DNA of 64,000 bases from Dicyema japonicum (lineage: Eukaryota; Animalia; Dicyemida). The stretch spans positions 848,154 to 912,153 of the forward strand of contig RDEW01000023.1 in NCBI GenBank assembly GCA_011109175.1, in the 5' to 3' direction. Position numbers and translations under genes: made by a program. This document shows positions 4,214 through 34,130 of the stretch, piece after piece. The stretch's first letter is position 1, and each line of letters opens with the position of its first letter. A model generated the notes under the pieces. The model saw nothing but the letters and a program-made list of their open reading frames with translations, had not been told where the DNA came from and made no database searches.

Positions 4214-6900
4214 TTGAATTGTTCGTCCTATCGGCTTATCAGAACTTGGAAGCGTGGGATCTCCTGCTCTGCTTGTGGAGATTTCTTCCACCTCGGGTGT
4301 ATCAAGCAATCCCAAGCAGCAGCGAGCGTGCTTGGAATATGGCACTGCCAGTCGTGCCTGGGCCTATGCAGGGAGGTTCCCCGTGCACGTGCCAATGTTA
4401 AATCTTCCGTTAATTACCCATCAACCACAGACCCTGAAACATTTCTACGTCTCATCTCTGAATTATGTTCTTCACGGACTATCCCTGTGAAGATTCCCAA
4501 GGTCGTACAACCTGTTGCTGCTGAGGCCCTTTCTAAAACGATCAAGATTCCCTCCGGACTAACGCAATACATGATTGGATGCGCTTATTAAGTTTTGCGC
4601 CTTCCGCACTAGGACTTGATCAAGATGGTCACGAAGAGGAGTCTCTCGCTACCACCATGAGGACCAATATTCGTTCTTTTTTGGGAGATATCCACATCCC
4701 CAGTTGTCCCATGGCTTCTAACCGTACGAGGGAGACACGTGGTCATAACAAGGAAGTCGAAGTGCTCCGTCTCAAAAGAACTGTCCGTTCGAAGTTAATC
4801 GAAGGTGGCACCCGCGCAGCTATCAGAGCACTTTCCTCGAGTGGACCACGAAAACCGACTCCAGACGCTTACAATATTTTACTGAACAAGCATCCACTGC
4901 CACCTCAAAACCTACGCCAAGTCGCTCCCCCATCCGGAGTGAGTCCCCTGATTACATCAAACGATGAAGTTCTCCTCGCAATACGGAATTTTGCCCCTAG
5001 TAGCAGTGGCGGGCTCGACGGAATGAAACCTGGCTACCTGAAGGATCTAACCTTCTTGTCTGTAGGAGACCAGGGACTTCGTCTTACGAATTCAATTACT
5101 TCACTTATGAATCAGATCTTGTCAGGAATTCTTCCCGAAGTTATGCCCCATGTCCTGTTCTCTCCCAATTTGATAGCCTTCAATAAGAAGGGCGGCTGAG
5201 TACGACCAGTTGCGGTCGTCTTTGTCTTCAGAAGACTTGCTGCTAAAATTGCCTCTAGACATTCTATTCCACTCGTCACAAAATTCTTGAACCCCTCAAG
5301 TAGGCGTCGGTATTCGCTTGGGATGCGAGGCCGCTGTCCATTCAGTGAGGATATTGTTAAACCACAATATAGAAGATTTCCGGAGCAATGTCCTGGTCAA
5401 ACTGGACATCAAGAACTCCTTTAATAGTCTAAGAAGGGACAACATCCTGGAGGCGTGTGTTGAGAGATGTCCTAATATTTTTGAATTCGTGAATCAGTTA
5501 TAGAGCCTACCTTCATTCTTACTTTTCGGAGACTACCTAATCCATTCATATTTTGGAGTGCAACAGGAAGATCCCTTGGACCCCTATTGTTTTGTCTTGC
5601 AATAGAGAAAATCACCAAACTTCCGCGCTCGCTCCTCAACCTATGGTATCTGGATGGTACGATCTTCGGAGGACCCCGGATACTGTTTCCCGGGACTTGG
5701 AAGTGATAATTCCAGCTTTGTTGGAGCTGGACTGGAATTAAATTACACTAAATGCGAAATCTACAATTGCGGACTTTCAGAGAAAGTATTCAAAAGCTTT
5801 GTCATGTTTCGGAAATTTACTGCCTGGAAGTATTTCCACACCCGATGAAGAACTTATATTCCTCGGATCCCCGATCACCATAAATGCAATGGGAAGAGCT
5901 ATACGTGAAAAAGCGACTGTTACTCGGAGAGACTCTGAACCGCTTGTGTCTACTTGACATGCATACAGCATTATTCCTCCTGAAAAACAGTCTGAACATG
6001 CAGAGCCTTGCATATGTCCTGAGGACTGCTCTCTATATCACCCTGTATGACCAACTCGCACAGATTAACGAGATCTTCCGTACGACAGCGGAACGTATCT
6101 TCAACGTCCGGTTCGAGGATTACTCATGGAAGCAAGCCACGCTGCCAGTAAGACTCGGAGGACTTGGAATTCGGAACCCTGTGGACCTTTCCCTCCTTTC
6201 ATACCTATCATCGCTAGTGGCTGTAACTCTCATGTCAAGAGGATTCTACACTCTATACTGAATTCTGCTATTGACAAGGACGCCGACCATGCTTCGTAAG
6301 GCCTGGAGCGCGAACTTATCAGCTTTCCTGCCTTCCTCGTTTTCTCAGCGGGGCTTGGACGATGCTAATATGCTGGAATTCTTTCAAAGATTTGCTAGTG
6401 TCATCTAGCCAACATCGCCGTGCTGCTTGTTGTCGGGGGCGTCTTCGAGAGCGGTGCCTGGCTCAACGCCATTCCCAATGGAGTTCTGGGTACCTTCCCG
6501 GATGATGAATGCGTACGTATTGGGATCTCATTGCGACTGGGATTAAAAGTCTGTGCTCCACAATCCGTGCCGATGCGGAGACAAGATCGACTGTTTTGGG
6601 CCTACACCCTCTCTCCTGTAGGAAGGGTGCAGGAAGATTTCCCAGACACATGGCCCTTGAACGAAGTCGTTAGGCGAGCTTTGTACGCCGCCGGACACCC
6701 CTCCATGCTCGAATCTGTCAGCCTTTGCAGGCGGGACGGGAAACGACCAGATGGGATGACAATATTCTCTTTGAAGCCGGGAAACCTCTTGTCTGGGACG
6801 TTACCTGCACCGACAATTTTCCTCTTGCAACCTACTCCAGAGTGCCTCTGGAGCCTGTTCTGCCGCTGAGAAGGCCGAGAAGATGAAACGGGAAAAGTTC
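4214..6900 (+). mobile_element. CRE-clade non-LTR retrotransposon, degenerate (PHD-like finger, RT, RLE endonuclease)
   Basis: CSACGDFFHLGC...WHCQSC; SSGGLDGMKP; KLDIKNSFNS; PVRLGGLGIR; SGAWLNAIP and RRDGKRPDG. Multiple stops and frameshifts. Confidence 0.85.
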
Positions 6901-10190: not shown

Positions 10191-10249
10191 GACAGACATA
10201 CACAACCAATATACAGACATACAAACATATTATCAAAATATTTTTATAA

Positions 10250-10410
10250 TTATTATTATTATTGAACCAGAAAACCACCGTCATATCCAAAATATACAAA
10301 ATTCAGGTGATCCCGGCCTCTCTCAACAGTCTTCGTATCTTTTCTCGGTGTTCAGACTGCGTTCCAGCGCACTTCCGATATGGGCGGGGTCCGCATACTC
10401 GAGTCCTTCG
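10250..10410 (-). mobile_element. 5'-truncated 3' end of Vingi-like LINE family B
   Basis: Encodes EHREKIRRLLREAGIT* then an (AAT)n tail. The same terminus recurs at about 85, 13150, 17650, 26310, 34410, 36100, 36520, 49370 and 50060. Confidence 0.7.
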
Positions 10411-10489
10411 CATAATAATATTTTAAATTATTTTAAAATTAATATTTTTATTCGATAATTTAATTTCAAATAATTTCTCAAATTTTTTC

Positions 10490-11899
10490 ATGCGGTATTT
10501 ATCCTCACTTGTGTCTTCAATCTACAAGCAGAGAAGACTACGACTAATTGAACTCCTCAGTAATCATGGCAACTGTATTGCGATTATCCCATCTTCCACT
10601 ACTCACTACTCTGCGCCTGATGTGCTTCACTTATTTAGACAGAACATGGATTTGTACTATTTAACAAGGCATACGAAGCCGGATTCTATTTTTGTACTGT
10701 CCCACGTGAATGGCACTTTTGGTGATTATTTACTCCTCTCTCCTTTTTCAAAGTGAAGAGCTTGTTGGGAGGGAGAGTCGCTCTCTTTGAAGAAAACGGC
10801 TGATTTATACTAGTTGAGTTATACTTTTGATGTCGGGAAGATCATAGACGTTTAAAGCCAATACAAAAATAAACATATTTTTTTTGACAATCTGGACCCT
10901 CAATTAAAATGGCCCAATATTTGCCACAATTTGAACTTGGCGAGTAAATTGCCGCTGTATCCATTCCTTCAGCCAATGAGACTAAGGAAGGATCTCGAAG
11001 AGGTTGAGACGATTCGTCAGTCTTGTCAAATTATGGGAGATTCTTTAAAACACGTGCTGAAGCTAACTCAAAGAAAAAATGTATGAATTGACCACCAACA
11101 CAATTAGATGTTTGAGTATCTCATGATGAGTGAAATTCGGCATCAATGTGTTCTCAGAGGATCCCATGGGATGACCTTCCAGTCCGTAGTAGCCTGCATG
11201 TGATCTTGTTATAAACAGGTGGTTTGAATTCTACCATTATTCACTATATGTATTATATAGGGATTTTTAAACTCGGGGATCTTATACTAACTGATACTGG
11301 ATGTCACGTGGGTTATTATATCAGTGATTTAACTCGAGTGTGGCCTTCCAGTGGGTGTCCCTTGTATAATTTAAAGGTACGTTCTCTGAAACCCTCTGAA
11401 AGAGATGTCTACGAGTGTGTCTTGGAATCCAATCTGGCGTGCATTGAGTCGTTTAGAAGTCATAATACCGTTAATTTTGTGAATAATTAAATGTATGAAG
11501 TATTGGCTGAAAATTTGGTTAAGAGGGGAGTTGTTACGACTGAAATCACTAACGTCACTAATCTTTGGTTGTTACATTTTAAATTAGGTTGTGAGATCGG
11601 AATTGTGCCTCCACAACGTGTCTCATTATTTGGGACTGGATGTCTATGATACGGATTCCGTTAGTAGATGTGCGTCCTTGAAGTCGGGATTTGTAATTAC
11701 AGTTGAACCTAGTATTTGCTGTGAGAAACATGTAGGTTTATATTTGGACAAAAATTGTCATTTTGTGAATGAAAAGTACAGGGGGATTGGAATACGAATT
11801 GAGGATGAATTGCAAATAACTGATGATGGGCTGGAGGTATTGACGAGTAATACCCCAAAGGAGATTAGGGATGTTGAAGAATTTCTTAACGATTACTAA
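10490..11899 (+). pseudogene. XPNPEP3: Xaa-Pro aminopeptidase 3 (mitochondrial Icp55-like, M24B), apparently disabled
   Basis: FRQNMDLYYLT..PDSIFVL, WEG, IIHY, DTGC..YISDLTRVWP, SHYLGLDV, ITVEP, GIRIED. In-frame stops TGA 10754, TAG 10811, TAA 10853, TAA 11488. DVH changed to DVY. Micro-introns present, one GC-AG. Confidence 0.75.
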
Positions 11900-12399
11900 A
11901 AGTTCTAGTAAAATCTTGGTTATATAAGATATTTTTGCTTTCGTTTTTATTACTATTATTGTTTAAGCGGGAAATTATATTCATAAAGACTAGGTTTATC
12001 AGTTATTTAATGATTTCGGAGAGAAATTTTGAGATTATTGAGAGCATAGTTTGAATATCTAGAGGTTTGCCATCACCACAACCATTAACCACTTTGCTAA
12101 CTAGTCAGAATAATGATTATTTCAAATATACAAATTAACAGAATGTTTAATTTGTATTGTTCCAGTTACATTTGCACAATAAGCTACAGTGATTATCACT
12201 TTTGATTGCTTTATGCCTTTTCTGTCTTGAAATGAAATTGAGAAGGAAAAGATTGAAAAAAGAGTCCAGTTTCATCCATCTTTCCCCGGGGACAATGTCA
12301 TTACCTGGAGACAAGTTCTGGAACGCTGGTACGAGTCAAGATCAAGGAGTTATTAATTTGGTTATCCTTGGTCTTTGGAATAAATTTAATTTTTAATGC

Positions 12400-14616: not shown

Positions 14617-17191
14617 CAAGGATTCTCAACGGCGGCCCCCCAGGATTTTGGTGCGGCCCGTTTAAAATTATAAAAAAAATATTACATATTTTACATAATG
14701 CAGCCGGATTTTAACTGTGCTTTTTTTCTGTTTGTTTCGTACAATAAACTTTTTATGGTTAAAAATTTTTTACATATTTTAACTATTGTTTTTAAATAAA
14801 AATATTTTTTTAAGAAATAGAATTATAAATCATATTTAAAGCTGTTATCCATCCAAAGTGGACCCCGCCGACATTATCGACGTTGCGTTGCCTCTCACGA
14901 TTGCAACAGAGATCAACTGGAGTAGCCACCGGGTCTCACGTGCTTCGTGGCTTTTTAGTGTAGCTAAGCGTCCAAGTTTCTTTAGGAAGCGAAGCGATTT
15001 TCCACTTATTCCTCCAGTTGTCTCGACCACTATCGGATAAAACGCGAATCGGTCGCGTAGCGCTTCGTATTTCTTCTCCTTTGCCCTCATCGTTTTTTCC
15101 GCGGAATACAGTGTGTCTACCGCGCTCCCGACAATGTTGGACGGGCAAAGCGTGTCGAACAAGTAGCGTCCCAGACCAAAGGTTTTCCCTCTTCGAATGG
15201 GAAAATTGTGATTCCGTCGGGACGTTTTCCGTCTCCTCTGTCCAGACCAACAGGTTCTAGTATGGCTGGGTATCCCGCAGACTCCAGGGCTCGCTTGACA
15301 ATTCCGTTGATCGCCTTGTGTCTTGAGAATCGTCCTGCACTCCTTCGACAAGAGAGGGAATGGAGTCCATAACAATCGACGGTTGCGCCACATCGGCATT
15401 TGTGGGTCCGGCAAATCTCCAGTCCAAGTCTGGTGGAGATGCCGATGCTGACAGTATCGTCGTCAAGGTGGGTCCCGACACTGCCAACTGGAGTGCATTG
15501 CCACTCGATTCGCATCTTCCAGTGACTAGACAGGCACGTCTGTGTTGGTTTGATTGGTTCAGAAGCCTCTCATGTTTTTAAATTAAATATTTTTTGTATT
15601 AAATTTTAATTAATATTGCTTGTGATGTCTGGAAAACATGTTAAAAGAAGTAGAAAAATTAAGAAATTCGTGCCTTTAACCCCGAATGAGAGGAACAATT
15701 TTTCGTTTTTGAAGAAAATGGCAAAGCACATTGCCTGATTTGTCATTTTGTTATACGATGTCTTAAGTTATATAATGTCGAGAGGCATTATATGAAACAT
15801 TCTTAAGAATATGATTCATTTCAAGGTGAATCAAGAAAAATCAAATTTCTATCTATGAAATCAAATCGCAAACTACAAACCACTTTGTTTAAACAGCCCA
15901 TGTCATCAAGATCCGCTACAATAGCTTCTTTCAAAATTTGTCATCTACTTGCAAAAAATATGAAGCCGTATTCAGATGGAGAATTTATTAAGCAGCTATC
16001 CTTATATTTACTGAAAAATGTTGTTCTTCAGAAATTAAACTAAATGTTATAAACTTACAGCTAAGCAACGATACAGTTACTCGGAGAATTGAGAGAATAT
16101 CTGACGATATTCAATGCCAGCTACTCACTGAATCCAACTTTTTCGTACACTAATCAATTGCTCTTGACACCACTAAAGATATTAGTGATACAGAACAAAT
16201 GGCTGTGTTTATTCGAGGTGTCATGCCTGACTTTTAAAATTTATGAAGAATTTCTTAAATAAAACTAAATTAAATGAAGAATTTCTCACGCTACGTAACT
16301 TTCATGGTTCTACTAAAGGAGCTGATATATTCCGTGAATTTCGTGATTGCATTGAAAAGGAACATTTGGATCTTTAAAAAATGTTTTCAATTGCCACAGA
16401 TGGATGTCTTTCTATGGTTGGATGGAAAACTGGGTTTCAAAGTCTCGTAGCTGGATGGCGAGTAGATGATGAGTTGAGTCCTGTGATTTGGCATCACTGC
16501 ATACTACATCAAGAAAATTTAGCTGTAAAATCTATGAAAATGGACCATGTAACAGATTGCAAGTAGAGTTACCATTCATTTTCCAATACTTTCAAACCAC
16601 AGGGAAAATGAATATGAAAAATATACCTCTGTTATTAGTGACTCAATCGATGAATTCGAAACACGGTTTAATGCTTTTAAAGAAGCTCTACCTATTATGA
16701 AAATATTTTCGTCACCTATGGAAACAGATGCTGCAACCGCTCCATATGTATATCAGCTGGAGCTAATTGAAATGCAGGCAGATTTACAACTTACCGCGCT
16801 ATTTAAGTCAAGTGAACTATTGGATTTTTGGAGTCGAATTCCACAATGGAAATATCCGAACTTGGTCAATAATGCTCAAAAAAATGCATCAGTCTTCGGA
16901 TCAACGTATGCATGTGAAGCTCTTTTCAGTAAACTTACGCGAATAAAAAGTAAGTATCGAAATCGATTGACTGATGAACAACTAATTCAACTTTTACGTA
17001 CATCGTCTTCGAACTTTACTTCTTGTTTCGATAAAATAGTAGACGCCAAGCAAAATCAAGTCTCACATTGATTCTCTTATTACGTAATAAAGCCTTTTTT
17101 CTTTAATCAAATAAAATATTTTTTGTGCGGCCCGCAAAGATACTCTTAATTATCGATTTGGCCCTTGAGCTAAAAAGGTTGAGATCCCCTG
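14617..17191 (+). mobile_element. hAT DNA transposon (Spin/Buster, GTF2IRD2-like transposase), degenerate
   Basis: Imperfect TIRs CAAGGATTCTCAAC / GTTGAGATCCCCTG. 8-bp TSD GTCTAGAC (14609-14616) / CTCTAGAC (17192-17199), matching the NTCTAGAN target. Motifs KPYSDGEFIK, SIATDG, HCILHQE, FGSTYACEALFS. Confidence 0.9.
14845..15530 (-). mobile_element. CRE-clade 3' (RLE) fragment nested in the hAT element
   Basis: CRCG..VDCYGLHSLSC, RFSRH, LEPVGLDRGDGKRPDG, FYPIVVETTG, ISVAIVRGNA. Confidence 0.85.
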
Positions 17192-33551: not shown

Positions 33552-34130
33552 ATGATTCTTAGTGGGGTTCGTTTGGTTTTAAAATTATTAGAGATTGCTA
33601 GCATTGAGAAGGCCTATAATTAAATTAAACTCGCCCAAACAGTGGTATTCGAAGAATATGAACGATTGGGAGTTAATTTATAAGGGAGCCTTCGCAATCG
33701 AGTATTAACAGTAAAAAGCTTCTCCCTCTTCACAAGTTTGACTGGTCTTGGTCTTCAAGGATTCCTAATTTTGGCGGGAAAAATAAAATTGTCCCTTTTA
33801 GGAGCTGCTGTCTTATTTTCCTTCAATATCTTCGTTTTAATGACTCCCATTTTGCTACACGTGCTGACACGGAATTATGTGATGGCTATTTACTATAACG
33901 AGTCCAAGGACATTTATCAACTAAACACATGTTCTTTGGTTTTGAGAACGCTGAAATTTCAAGTTCGGAATACTGACGTTACTATTCCTCCGATTCCTCG
34001 GTTTTTTGAAACTTTCCGTGTCAACAATCGATCCTTTTTCACTTCAGAAGAGGGATTTTCTACACGTGCTCACTTTAAGCGATTCTTTGAAGGGGATGAT
34101 GTGCTTAATAAGGCTGATGAAGTTATTTAA
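33552..34130 (+). pseudogene. TMEM70: TMEM70 (mitochondrial ATP synthase c-ring assembly factor) with a 1-nt frameshift
   Basis: Exon 1 plus intron 33567-33591 gives an Arg-rich presequence MILSGRLLALRRPIIKL. Then DWELIY[fs]GSLRNRVLTVKSFSLFTS, TPILLHVLTRNYVMAIYYN, DVTIP...FETF. Frame break at about 33682; could be an assembly error. Confidence 0.7.

Follow-up and report, generated by a model that had tools for sequence, protein, structure and literature searches.

The question raised by this locus is whether the gene for a mitochondrial processing peptidase has died in Dicyema japonicum, and, if it has, whether its death tells of a reduction of the mitochondrion. D. japonicum is a parasite of the octopus kidney, and the stretch of DNA analyzed here (the window; 64,000 nucleotides) carries at 10490–11899 a broken gene resembling XPNPEP3, the animal orthologue of yeast Icp55, which trims imported mitochondrial proteins. 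The original prediction, made from the letters of the window, regarded this gene as pseudogenized and suggested that, together with a TMEM70 match in the same window, it might record an ongoing mitochondrial reduction on the model of Henneguya; a dead paralog was named as the alternative.

The identity of the gene was examined by profile, structure, and protein-library comparisons. AMP_N (PF05195) matched the first open piece of the locus (10490–10753) with an E value of 1.2e-10, and the match improved to 1.3e-14 (59.5 bits, model positions 1–113) across the three 5' stops; thus, these stops interrupt homologous coding sequence rather than lying within introns. Peptidase_M24 (PF00557) matched two further pieces, 11221–11487 (E 2.6e-10) and 11591–11896 (E 3.9e-07), and a scan of the genome with this profile scored the window locus at 43.8 bits. 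Among solved structures, human XPNPEP3 (APP3; 5x49) was the best match to the last exon (E 6.7e-18, 67.9 bits), followed by lower scores for E. coli PepP (49.8 bits), yeast Icp55 (46.6 bits), and prolidase (PEPD; 32 bits). The best matches of this exon in the protein library included XPNPEP3-like or AMP_N-bearing animal proteins, with an identity of up to 55%; one of the top matches was named Xaa-Pro aminopeptidase 3-like, and others were AMP_N-bearing animal proteins. The pseudogene was collinear from end to end with animal XPNPEP3-like proteins, and it has the same layout of AMP_N and pita-bread M24 domains as human XPNPEP3 and yeast Icp55 (6a9t), both of which are mitochondrial Xaa-Pro aminopeptidases of peptidase family M24B. 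By comparison of scores, the locus lies closer to the XPNPEP3 subfamily than to PepP, prolidase, or XPNPEP1. The reading frame opens only about 10 residues ahead of AMP_N (MRYLSSLVSS...), and no upstream coding exon for an N-terminal presequence was visible in the upstream flank common to the copies described below; that the ancestral protein was directed to mitochondria is a presumption based on orthology.

The locus comprised six exons and five micro-introns (Table 1). The persistence of the exon–intron structure, which had been read from the sequence of the window, held when copies elsewhere in the genome were aligned, as all five micro-introns were present in every copy that spans them. 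The donor of micro-intron 2 was GC in the window copy and in one of the C375 copies, and GT in the C7 and C168 copies.

Table 1. Features of the XPNPEP3 pseudogene and of the duplicated segment around it (window positions; copies elsewhere in the genome are named as in the text)
Feature	Position	Strand	Basis
Part of the duplicated segment present in the window copy (5' leader, gene, 164 nt of 3' flank)	10412..12063	+	Genome DNA search, local BLAST
XPNPEP3/Icp55-type Xaa-Pro aminopeptidase pseudogene (AMP_N and Peptidase_M24)	10490..11899	+	Pfam, PDB phmmer, collinear alignment
Exon 1: AMP_N domain and linker, three nonsense codons	10490..11080	+	
TGA nonsense codon, window copy only; GGA in C168	10754..10756	+	Copy alignment
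TAG nonsense codon, common to the window copy and C375; GAG in C7 and C168	10811..10813	+	
TAA nonsense codon, common to the window copy and C375; TTA in C7 and C168	10853..10855	+	
Micro-intron 1, 27 nt, GT-AG, kept in all copies spanning it	11081..11107	+	Flanking frames fit orthologues
Exon 2	11108..11195	+	Orthologue alignment
Micro-intron 2, 23 nt	11196..11218	+	Copy alignment and frame bookkeeping
Exon 3: both Asp metal ligands (LTDTGC, SDLTR)	11219..11353	+	Pfam, structure and orthologue alignments
Micro-intron 3 remnant, 23 nt	11354..11376	+	Copy alignment
Exon 4, possibly up to 11553 if micro-intron 4 is 34 nt	11377..11532	+	
4-nt insertion (TCTG), window copy only; frameshifting when intron 3 is spliced out	11395..11398	+	Copy alignment
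TAA nonsense codon, common to the window copy, C7, and C168; TTA in C375	11488..11490	+	
Micro-intron 4, 55 nt, or 34 nt (11554..11587)	11533..11587	+	Frame change between exons
Exon 5: CPHH to CLHN, His ligand (SHYLG), DVHD to DVYD, Glu ligand (VEP)	11588..11711	+	
Micro-intron 5, 24 nt, GT-AG	11712..11735	+	8-residue gap against 5x49 and PepP
Exon 6: RIEDE Glu ligand, C-terminus, TAA terminator (11897..11899)	11736..11899	+	

Four in-frame stops of all three types had been claimed within alignable sequence, and all of them were found: the stops at 10754 (TGA), 10811 (TAG), and 10853 (TAA) are in phase with the ATG at 10490, and that at 11488 (TAA) is in phase with exon 4. Sense codons (GGA, GAG, and TTA) stand at the corresponding positions of paralogous copies. 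Micro-introns hiding the stops were rejected, as no GT..AG interval of at least 21 nt removes any of the four stops in frame. In the window copy, the donor of intron 3 (11354–11355) was lost by a change from GT to GG, and this intron was shortened by a 1-nt deletion from the 24 nt of the other copies. Together with the 4-nt insertion in exon 4, the retained intron 3 makes an in-frame stretch of 27 nt. Given the four nonsense codons, the GG donor, and the insertion, an uninterrupted frame with usable splice sites is absent from the window copy.

The active site was altered as well. The metal ligands were located from the known ligand positions of PepP in alignments with 5x49, PepP, and animal XPNPEP3 proteins; all five (Asp, Asp, His, Glu, and Glu) were kept in the window copy, within LTDTGC, SDLTR, SHYLG, VEP, and RIEDE. 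The two active-site substitutions of the original prediction were borne out by the alignment of copies, and both were specific to the window copy. DVHD was changed to DVYD (CAT to TAT at 11645; codon 11645–11647), while the C375, C7, and C168 copies keep DVHD. EPG was changed to EPS (G to A at 11711), so that the codon split over micro-intron 5 reads A/GT (Ser) in the window copy and G/GT (Gly) in all others. The change from CPHH to CLHN (11609 and 11615) was also found in the window copy only. E. coli PepP (1a16; active-site mutants 2bws–2bwy) belongs to the same fold family, and its metal ligands align with those of the locus (SHWLG/SHYLG for the His); the Tyr of DVYD aligns with His361 in the DVHD of PepP, a conserved second-shell histidine. 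Unlike PepP, the Dicyema locus is an animal gene with spliceosomal micro-introns, and it differs from human XPNPEP3 and yeast Icp55 in its broken frame, its DVYD, EPS, and CLHN motifs, and the absence of any presequence-coding exon among those found.

The locus also proved to be one of six copies, which had not been noticed before. XPNPEP3 is normally a single-copy gene; in D. japonicum, unlike this usual state, the gene lies in a duplicated segment, roughly 3 kb or longer, that was found at six places, namely C146 (the window), C7, C168, C112, and C375 (two copies). The four other main copies were 84–88% identical to the window copy, and the sixth was an older fragment. The copy at C375:13002–14399 (86% identical) was 5'-truncated, with seven indels and five aligned stops, and that at C7:27966–29485 (84% identical) had four aligned stops and 10 indels, among them a 116-nt deletion removing the Glu of RIEDE. 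The copy at C168:132698–135848 (87–88% identical) had 12 indels and three aligned stops, and was interrupted by a hAT-like insertion of 1.6 kb as well as by an inserted LINE tail. C112:24199–24601 was a 3' fragment, and C375:59124–60473 was the older fragment, with an identity of 69–76%. Each copy is broken by multiple lesions, whether nonsense codons, frameshifts, truncations, or inserted transposons. Three of the four window stops recurred at the same aligned codon in copies on other scaffolds, the TAA at 11488 being present in three of the four copies that span this codon. The relationships among the copies were mosaic, the closest copies differing by region.

The copies shared more than the gene itself. 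In the window, homology to the C168 copy begins at 10412, and homology to the C375, C112, and C168 copies ends at 12062–12063; the other copies reach further on both sides, with common flanks of at least 1.1 kb upstream (non-coding) and about 390 nt downstream. The upstream flank common to the other copies is missing from the window copy; it is low-copy (C168:131352–132180) and was found only beside XPNPEP3 copies. No A-runs or clear target-site duplications were seen at the copy ends. With their introns retained, common non-coding flanks, and no poly(A) tail, the copies fit an unprocessed pseudogene.

Substitutions between the copies were compared with neutral expectation. The changes in the window lineage comprised six synonymous, 25 nonsynonymous, and one nonsense substitution, and this pattern looks neutral. 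Differences between copies were spread nearly evenly over the codon positions (e.g., 38/23/38 and 51/34/41). Pairwise dN/dS between copies was 0.42–0.68, compared with a mean of 0.65–0.74 and a range of 0.43–1.25 in the neutral simulation, and two pairs (0.42 and 0.44) lay at its lower edge. Among the changes found only in the C168 copy, the share of synonymous ones was rather high (12 of 28). Because of these low pairs and the synonymous excess of C168, part of the divergence may have arisen under constraint.

The pseudogene call was therefore strengthened by the stops, the lost donor, the frameshifting insertion, the active-site changes, and the neutral-looking substitutions. We conclude that the locus is very probably a non-functional unprocessed XPNPEP3 pseudogene, one of six dispersed decayed copies, and not a marker of mitochondrial loss. 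The copies probably make no protein. A stretch of DNA roughly 3 kb or longer, with the upstream flank, the gene, and the 3' flank, would have been copied to at least six places, and the copies would then have decayed separately through nonsense substitutions, indels of 1–2 nt, deletions, and transposon insertions. The founder was, or recently had been, a working gene, as the aligned copies keep LTDTGC, SDLTR, VEPG, RIEDE, and CPHHVSHYLGLDVHD, the last three being motifs of XPNPEP3. As some stops are common to several copies, some duplications or gene conversion came later than the first inactivation; the common stops and the mosaic relationships suggest copying of a gene that had already died, or else gene conversion between copies.

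The whole assembly (67,542,437 bases, 377 contigs) was searched for an intact XPNPEP3 with two profiles (AMP_N and M24), with DNA, and with a full-length animal XPNPEP3 query, and none was found. AMP_N matched only the XPNPEP3 copy family; the matches on C7 and C168, considered as an intact paralogue, were decayed copies of the same family. The remaining M24 loci were read by eye as MetAP1, MetAP2, SPT16, and XPNPEP1. The full-length query retrieved decayed loci only, and a divergent match at C375:59–60 kb, considered as a gene, was the older fragment instead. Among 1.84 billion cluster representatives, no protein exceeded 55% identity to the last exon, and no encoding contigs were on record for the open pieces of 88 and 102 amino acids; records of the species' own genome are possibly absent from both collections.

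These results bear on the dead-paralog alternative, which stood insofar as the locus belongs to a set of six decayed copies at scattered sites and failed insofar as no intact copy was found in the assembly. The published assembly has 67.5 Mb in 377 scaffolds, a GC content of 36.7%, and a mean intron length of 38 bp, with a CEGMA/BUSCO completeness of 77%/76%, 4.1% gaps, and 49% repeats (PMC6736024). An intact copy could be missing because the assembly is incomplete to this extent. It is thus quite conceivable, although we lean against it, that only dead paralogues have been seen, a functional XPNPEP3 being missing from or collapsed in the draft and Icp55-type processing continuing. In keeping with this, no presequence exon can be identified in any copy, the upstream flank of the others is missing from the window copy, and dN/dS is weakly sub-neutral in some pairs; against it stand the whole-assembly searches, which gave decayed copies only, the protein-library result with its possible gap for the species' own records, and the sharing of the TAA at 11488. 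Returning to the pseudogene family itself, Icp55-type trimming has presumably either been lost in D. japonicum or depends on a copy that the approximately 76%-complete assembly lacks. The loss of XPNPEP3 may be real, as six copies exist and none is intact. We tentatively raise the further idea, which we consider rather unlikely, that Icp55/XPNPEP3 is truly gone from D. japonicum although its mitochondria still respire and carry a genome, and that the dead gene then spread to six loci by DNA-level copying that is perhaps unusually active in dicyemids.

That the loss forms part of an ongoing, Henneguya-like mitochondrial reduction is very improbable. The failure to find an intact XPNPEP3 in the assembly would agree with it, but the other mitochondrial machinery that was checked is present, and for this reason the dead XPNPEP3 is no evidence that the mitochondrion is being lost. 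M16 peptidase loci (best 105 bits), including a likely MPP, were found in the genome, as were M3 peptidase loci, ATP synthase gamma, and the mitochondrial RNA polymerase (POLRMT; 164 bits). The TMEM70 match, proposed as a partner sign of reduction, was free of stops and open under the standard code (33684–34085). Icp55 itself is non-essential in yeast. Furthermore, eight mitochondrial protein-coding genes have been described for D. japonicum (10.1101/282285), and the genes on Dicyema mitochondrial minicircles are transcribed (PMC6543705). The dead XPNPEP3 copy is not a marker of mitochondrial loss, and the attractive over-reading that a dead mitochondrial gene here means mitochondrial reduction is corrected.

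Although the draft was built from short reads and PacBio data for a repeat-rich, heterozygous genome (PMC6736024), it is scarcely credible that the gene is functional and its stops are assembly or sequencing artefacts, paralogue chimeras, or codons of a recoded or variant code, as three of the four recur in independently assembled copies on other scaffolds and are accompanied by the lost donor, the 4-nt insertion, the active-site substitutions, and the neutral spectrum, while a variant code is contradicted by the occurrence of all three stop types, the sense codons of the paralogues, and the open frame of the neighboring TMEM70.

By itself, the pseudogene is an ordinary one in a repeat-rich parasite genome. 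Its family resembles other families of unprocessed pseudogenes in the retained introns, scattered lesions, neutral pattern, transposable elements flanking or interrupting the copies, and repeat-rich setting; it is unlike the usual ones in having six copies of which none is intact, stops common to copies, and mosaic relationships. If the loss is true, D. japonicum would be a natural knockout in which one could ask how far an animal can dispense with the N-terminal trimming of imported proteins, and whether a shift in its presequence cleavage motifs has made up for the loss.

As for the route by which the copies spread, small extrachromosomal circular DNAs have been reported in Dicyema (PMC6543705), and their excision and re-integration is one candidate process. 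LINE 3'-transduction was rejected in view of the low-copy flank and the lack of target-site duplications and poly(A); no similarity to the LINE of the window at 39–43 kb was found. An ORF resembling an ORF2 tail in the C168 copy was a separate insertion of a high-copy LINE (3,559 candidates). The copy family provides a clean case of unprocessed pseudogenes multiplying and exchanging sequence in a genome with introns of 22–27 nt.

A three-frame translation of window positions 10400-11960 located a gene running from an ATG at 10490 to a TAA at 11897-11899. Pfam matched AMP_N (PF05195) in the first open piece (10490-10753, E 1.2e-10) and Peptidase_M24 (PF00557) in two later pieces (11221-11487 and 11591-11896). 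In the six-frame genome scan, AMP_N model positions 1-113 were matched through three stops, one each of TGA, TAG, and TAA, and the score was higher than that of the first open piece alone (59.5 vs 41.6 bits); thus, the three 5' stops sit in homologous coding sequence. Exons were searched singly; translations joined across exons, with each stop written as X, served local alignment only. The top solved structure for the last exon was human XPNPEP3 (5x49; E 6.7e-18, 67.9 bits), whereas E. coli aminopeptidase P (49.8 bits), yeast Icp55 (46.6 bits), and prolidase (32 bits) scored lower; an 8-residue gap of the last-exon region against 5x49 was due to the 24-nt intron 5. In a search of 1.84 billion cluster representatives, the closest relatives were at most 55% identical, and the best included a tick Xaa-Pro aminopeptidase 3-like protein and other animal AMP_N proteins, with which the window copy was collinear from AMP_N through the C-terminus in local alignment. 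Domains, best structure, collinear alignment, and lesions agreed with the original prediction of an XPNPEP3/Icp55 pseudogene; judged from its sequence, window 10490-11899 is a dead XPNPEP3 gene, and the pseudogene is real.

As predicted, in-frame stops of all three types interrupt the alignable sequence: TGA 10754 (GGA in other copies), TAG 10811 (sense form GAG in other copies), TAA 10853 (sense form TTA in other copies), and TAA 11488 (TTA in C375, another contig of the assembly). An assembly artefact is very unlikely, because three of the four stops are also present on other scaffolds, in copies that were assembled independently. The expected DVHD>DVYD and EPG>EPS changes were found, and these and CPHH>CLHN were confined to the window copy. 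The DVHD histidine, a residue taken to be functionally important, is the aligned counterpart of His361 in E. coli PepP; all five metal-ligand positions persist. The intron-3 donor is changed from GT to GG, the same intron is one base shorter, and a 4-nt insertion (TCTG, 11395-11398) lies just 3' of it. The frame looks continuous over 11354-11398 because the retained 23-nt intron and the 4 nt add up to 27 nt; on this reading of the sequence, the open frame is a coincidence in a region spliced in the ancestral structure, and splicing of intron 3 in the window copy would shift the frame. The claimed persistence of the exon–intron structure thus held for the introns, each kept in every copy spanning it, but not for this donor site.

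Exon–intron model of the window copy, read from the sequence (window positions), and the five related places on other contigs
Feature	Position	Strand	Identity to window copy	Basis or remark
Exon 1	10490-11080	+		sequence
Intron 1	11081-11107	+		27 nt
Exon 2	11108-11195	+		sequence
Intron 2	11196-11218	+		23 nt; GC-AG in window copy and C375, GT-AG in C7 and C168
Exon 3	11219-11353	+		sequence
Intron 3	11354-11376	+		23 nt in window copy, 24 nt in other copies
Exon 4	11377-11532, or to 11553	+		sequence
Intron 4	11533-11587	+		55 nt, or 34 nt from 11554
Exon 5	11588-11711	+		sequence
Intron 5	11712-11735	+		24 nt
Exon 6	11736-11899	+		sequence
C375 copy	C375:13002-14399	-	86%	5'-truncated at window position 10672
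C7 copy	C7:27966-29485	+	84%	scaffold gap; 116-nt deletion takes out RIEDE glutamate
C168 copy	C168:132698-133393 + 134994-135848	+	87-88%	split by 1.6-kb element
C112 copy	C112:24199-24601	-	88%	3' fragment
Second C375 place	C375:59124-60473	-	69-76%	older fragment, thoroughly decayed

A genome-wide DNA search found five places beyond the window copy, which is thus one of six. Indels relative to the other copies numbered 2 in the window copy, 7 in C375, 10 in C7, and 12 in C168, and stops in aligned codons numbered 4, 5, 4, and 3, respectively. TAG 10811 and TAA 10853 are common to the window copy and C375, and TAA 11488 to the window copy, C7, and C168. Which copy is nearest to the window copy depends on the region: C375 over the first (5') third of the gene, C168 over its middle part, and C7 over the last (3') third. 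These mosaic relationships in the aligned sequences point to gene conversion or recombination among copies, and at least some copying therefore postdates the breakage of the gene. In the C7 copy (region C7:28700-28800), an N scaffold gap is flanked by a 48-nt repeat of the preceding sequence; gap closing during draft assembly, and not biology, probably produced this feature.

The searched genome comprised 67,542,437 bases in 377 contigs; the assembly is described as 67.5 Mb in 377 scaffolds, with a GC content of 36.7%, 49% repeats, a mean intron of 38 bp, and CEGMA/BUSCO values of 77%/76% (PMC6736024). An AMP_N profile search of the assembly gave no match outside the XPNPEP3 copy family. Other M24 loci were assigned by eye to MetAP2 (C24), SPT16 (C323:1311290), MetAP1 (C323:681551), and XPNPEP1 (C68), and a full-length animal XPNPEP3 query (P0007, 469 aa) matched only C7, C146 (the contig of the window), C375, and C168. 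From these searches, XPNPEP3 is present in the assembly as wreckage only. As the assembly is incomplete, a working copy may exist outside it, though this is less likely than not. The proposed alternative of a dead paralog was right in that the locus is one of several copies, but an intact counterpart was absent from the assembly (0/6 copies intact). What is new, as read from these sequences, is a decayed six-copy family bearing signs of sequence exchange, with no intact copy in the assembly. As an object it is ordinary; its modest interest is that an animal may truly have lost Icp55-type processing.

At least 1.1 kb of frame-free upstream sequence is common to C168, C112, C7, and both C375 places, and a whole-assembly search found no other occurrence of this flank at E below 1e-10. 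A 3' flank of approximately 390 nt is common to C375 and C112, with progressively less in C7, C168, and the window. The shared segment of the window copy begins at 10412, right after a 165-bp SINE-like repeat. At the inspected ends, the copies had no poly(A) and no clear target-site duplications, and they kept their introns. The simplest reading would be dispersed DNA-level segmental duplication, followed by erosion through deletions and transposon insertions. Part of this low-copy upstream flank (C375:63661-64073) lies approximately 3.2 kb from the oldest, most decayed fragment (C375:59124-60473); flank and gene thus formed one unit by the time of the earliest duplication observed.

Differences between copies were nearly even over the three codon positions. 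Pairwise dN/dS values (Nei-Gojobori) were 0.42-0.68, and a neutral simulation re-placing the same substitutions at random gave means of 0.65-0.74 (95% ranges 0.43-1.25). Changes in the window lineage (6 synonymous, 25 nonsynonymous, and 1 nonsense) were in neutral proportion. Two pairs lay at the lower bound of the simulated values, and C168 showed a mild synonymous excess; the early divergence may in part have been under constraint, the data being few.

The dead gene had been read, together with TMEM70, as a possible sign of ongoing mitochondrial reduction. This is not supported, as the core mitochondrial genes checked were present: M16 peptidase loci (best 105 bits, expected MPP type), M3 peptidase loci, ATP synthase gamma, and mitochondrial RNA polymerase (164 bits). 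The TMEM70 match (PF06979, window 33684-34085 (+), E 2.9e-13, model 8-154) has no internal stop, and its open frame ends at 34130; as no ATG precedes the domain, the start codon probably lies in an exon further upstream. Two weaker TMEM70-like loci were seen in C235 and C1. Eight mitochondrial protein-coding genes have been described in D. japonicum (10.1101/282285), and transcription of minicircle genes is on record for Dicyema (PMC6543705). The formation of pseudogenes appears to characterise the D. japonicum genome rather than its mitochondrial gene set.

The C168 copy is split at window-equivalent 11196 by a 1.6-kb insertion (C168:133394-134993) with imperfect terminal inverted repeats (CAGGGTTGGCCAACC / CAGGGGTGGACAACC), a flanking TGTACGT duplication, and no long ORF; these features resemble those of a non-autonomous element of the hAT type. 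The leader of this copy carries a LINE tail as an insertion of approximately 410 nt. Inside it, an 88-aa open frame (C168:132394-132657), for which no Pfam model was found, resembles by its sequence the C-terminal end of ORF2 from a non-LTR retrotransposon. This family is very abundant, with 3,559 first-look candidates; protein-level identity was 85-93% for many of them, and some matches lay within open frames as long as 1,179 aa. The SINE-like repeat (approximately 165 bp, window 10246-10412 (+)) lies immediately 5' of the pseudogene leader; its copies have a sharp 3' end and a ragged 5' end, and it gave 687 first-look candidates in the genome, of which approximately 35 scored copies were 86-94% identical. 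An ORF at window 4214-4588 (+) had a weak, below-cut-off PHD-finger match (E 9.6e-05), and another at 16697-17068 (+) carries a hAT C-terminal dimerisation domain (PF05699, E 7.7e-09). Transposon remains are plentiful around the pseudogene.
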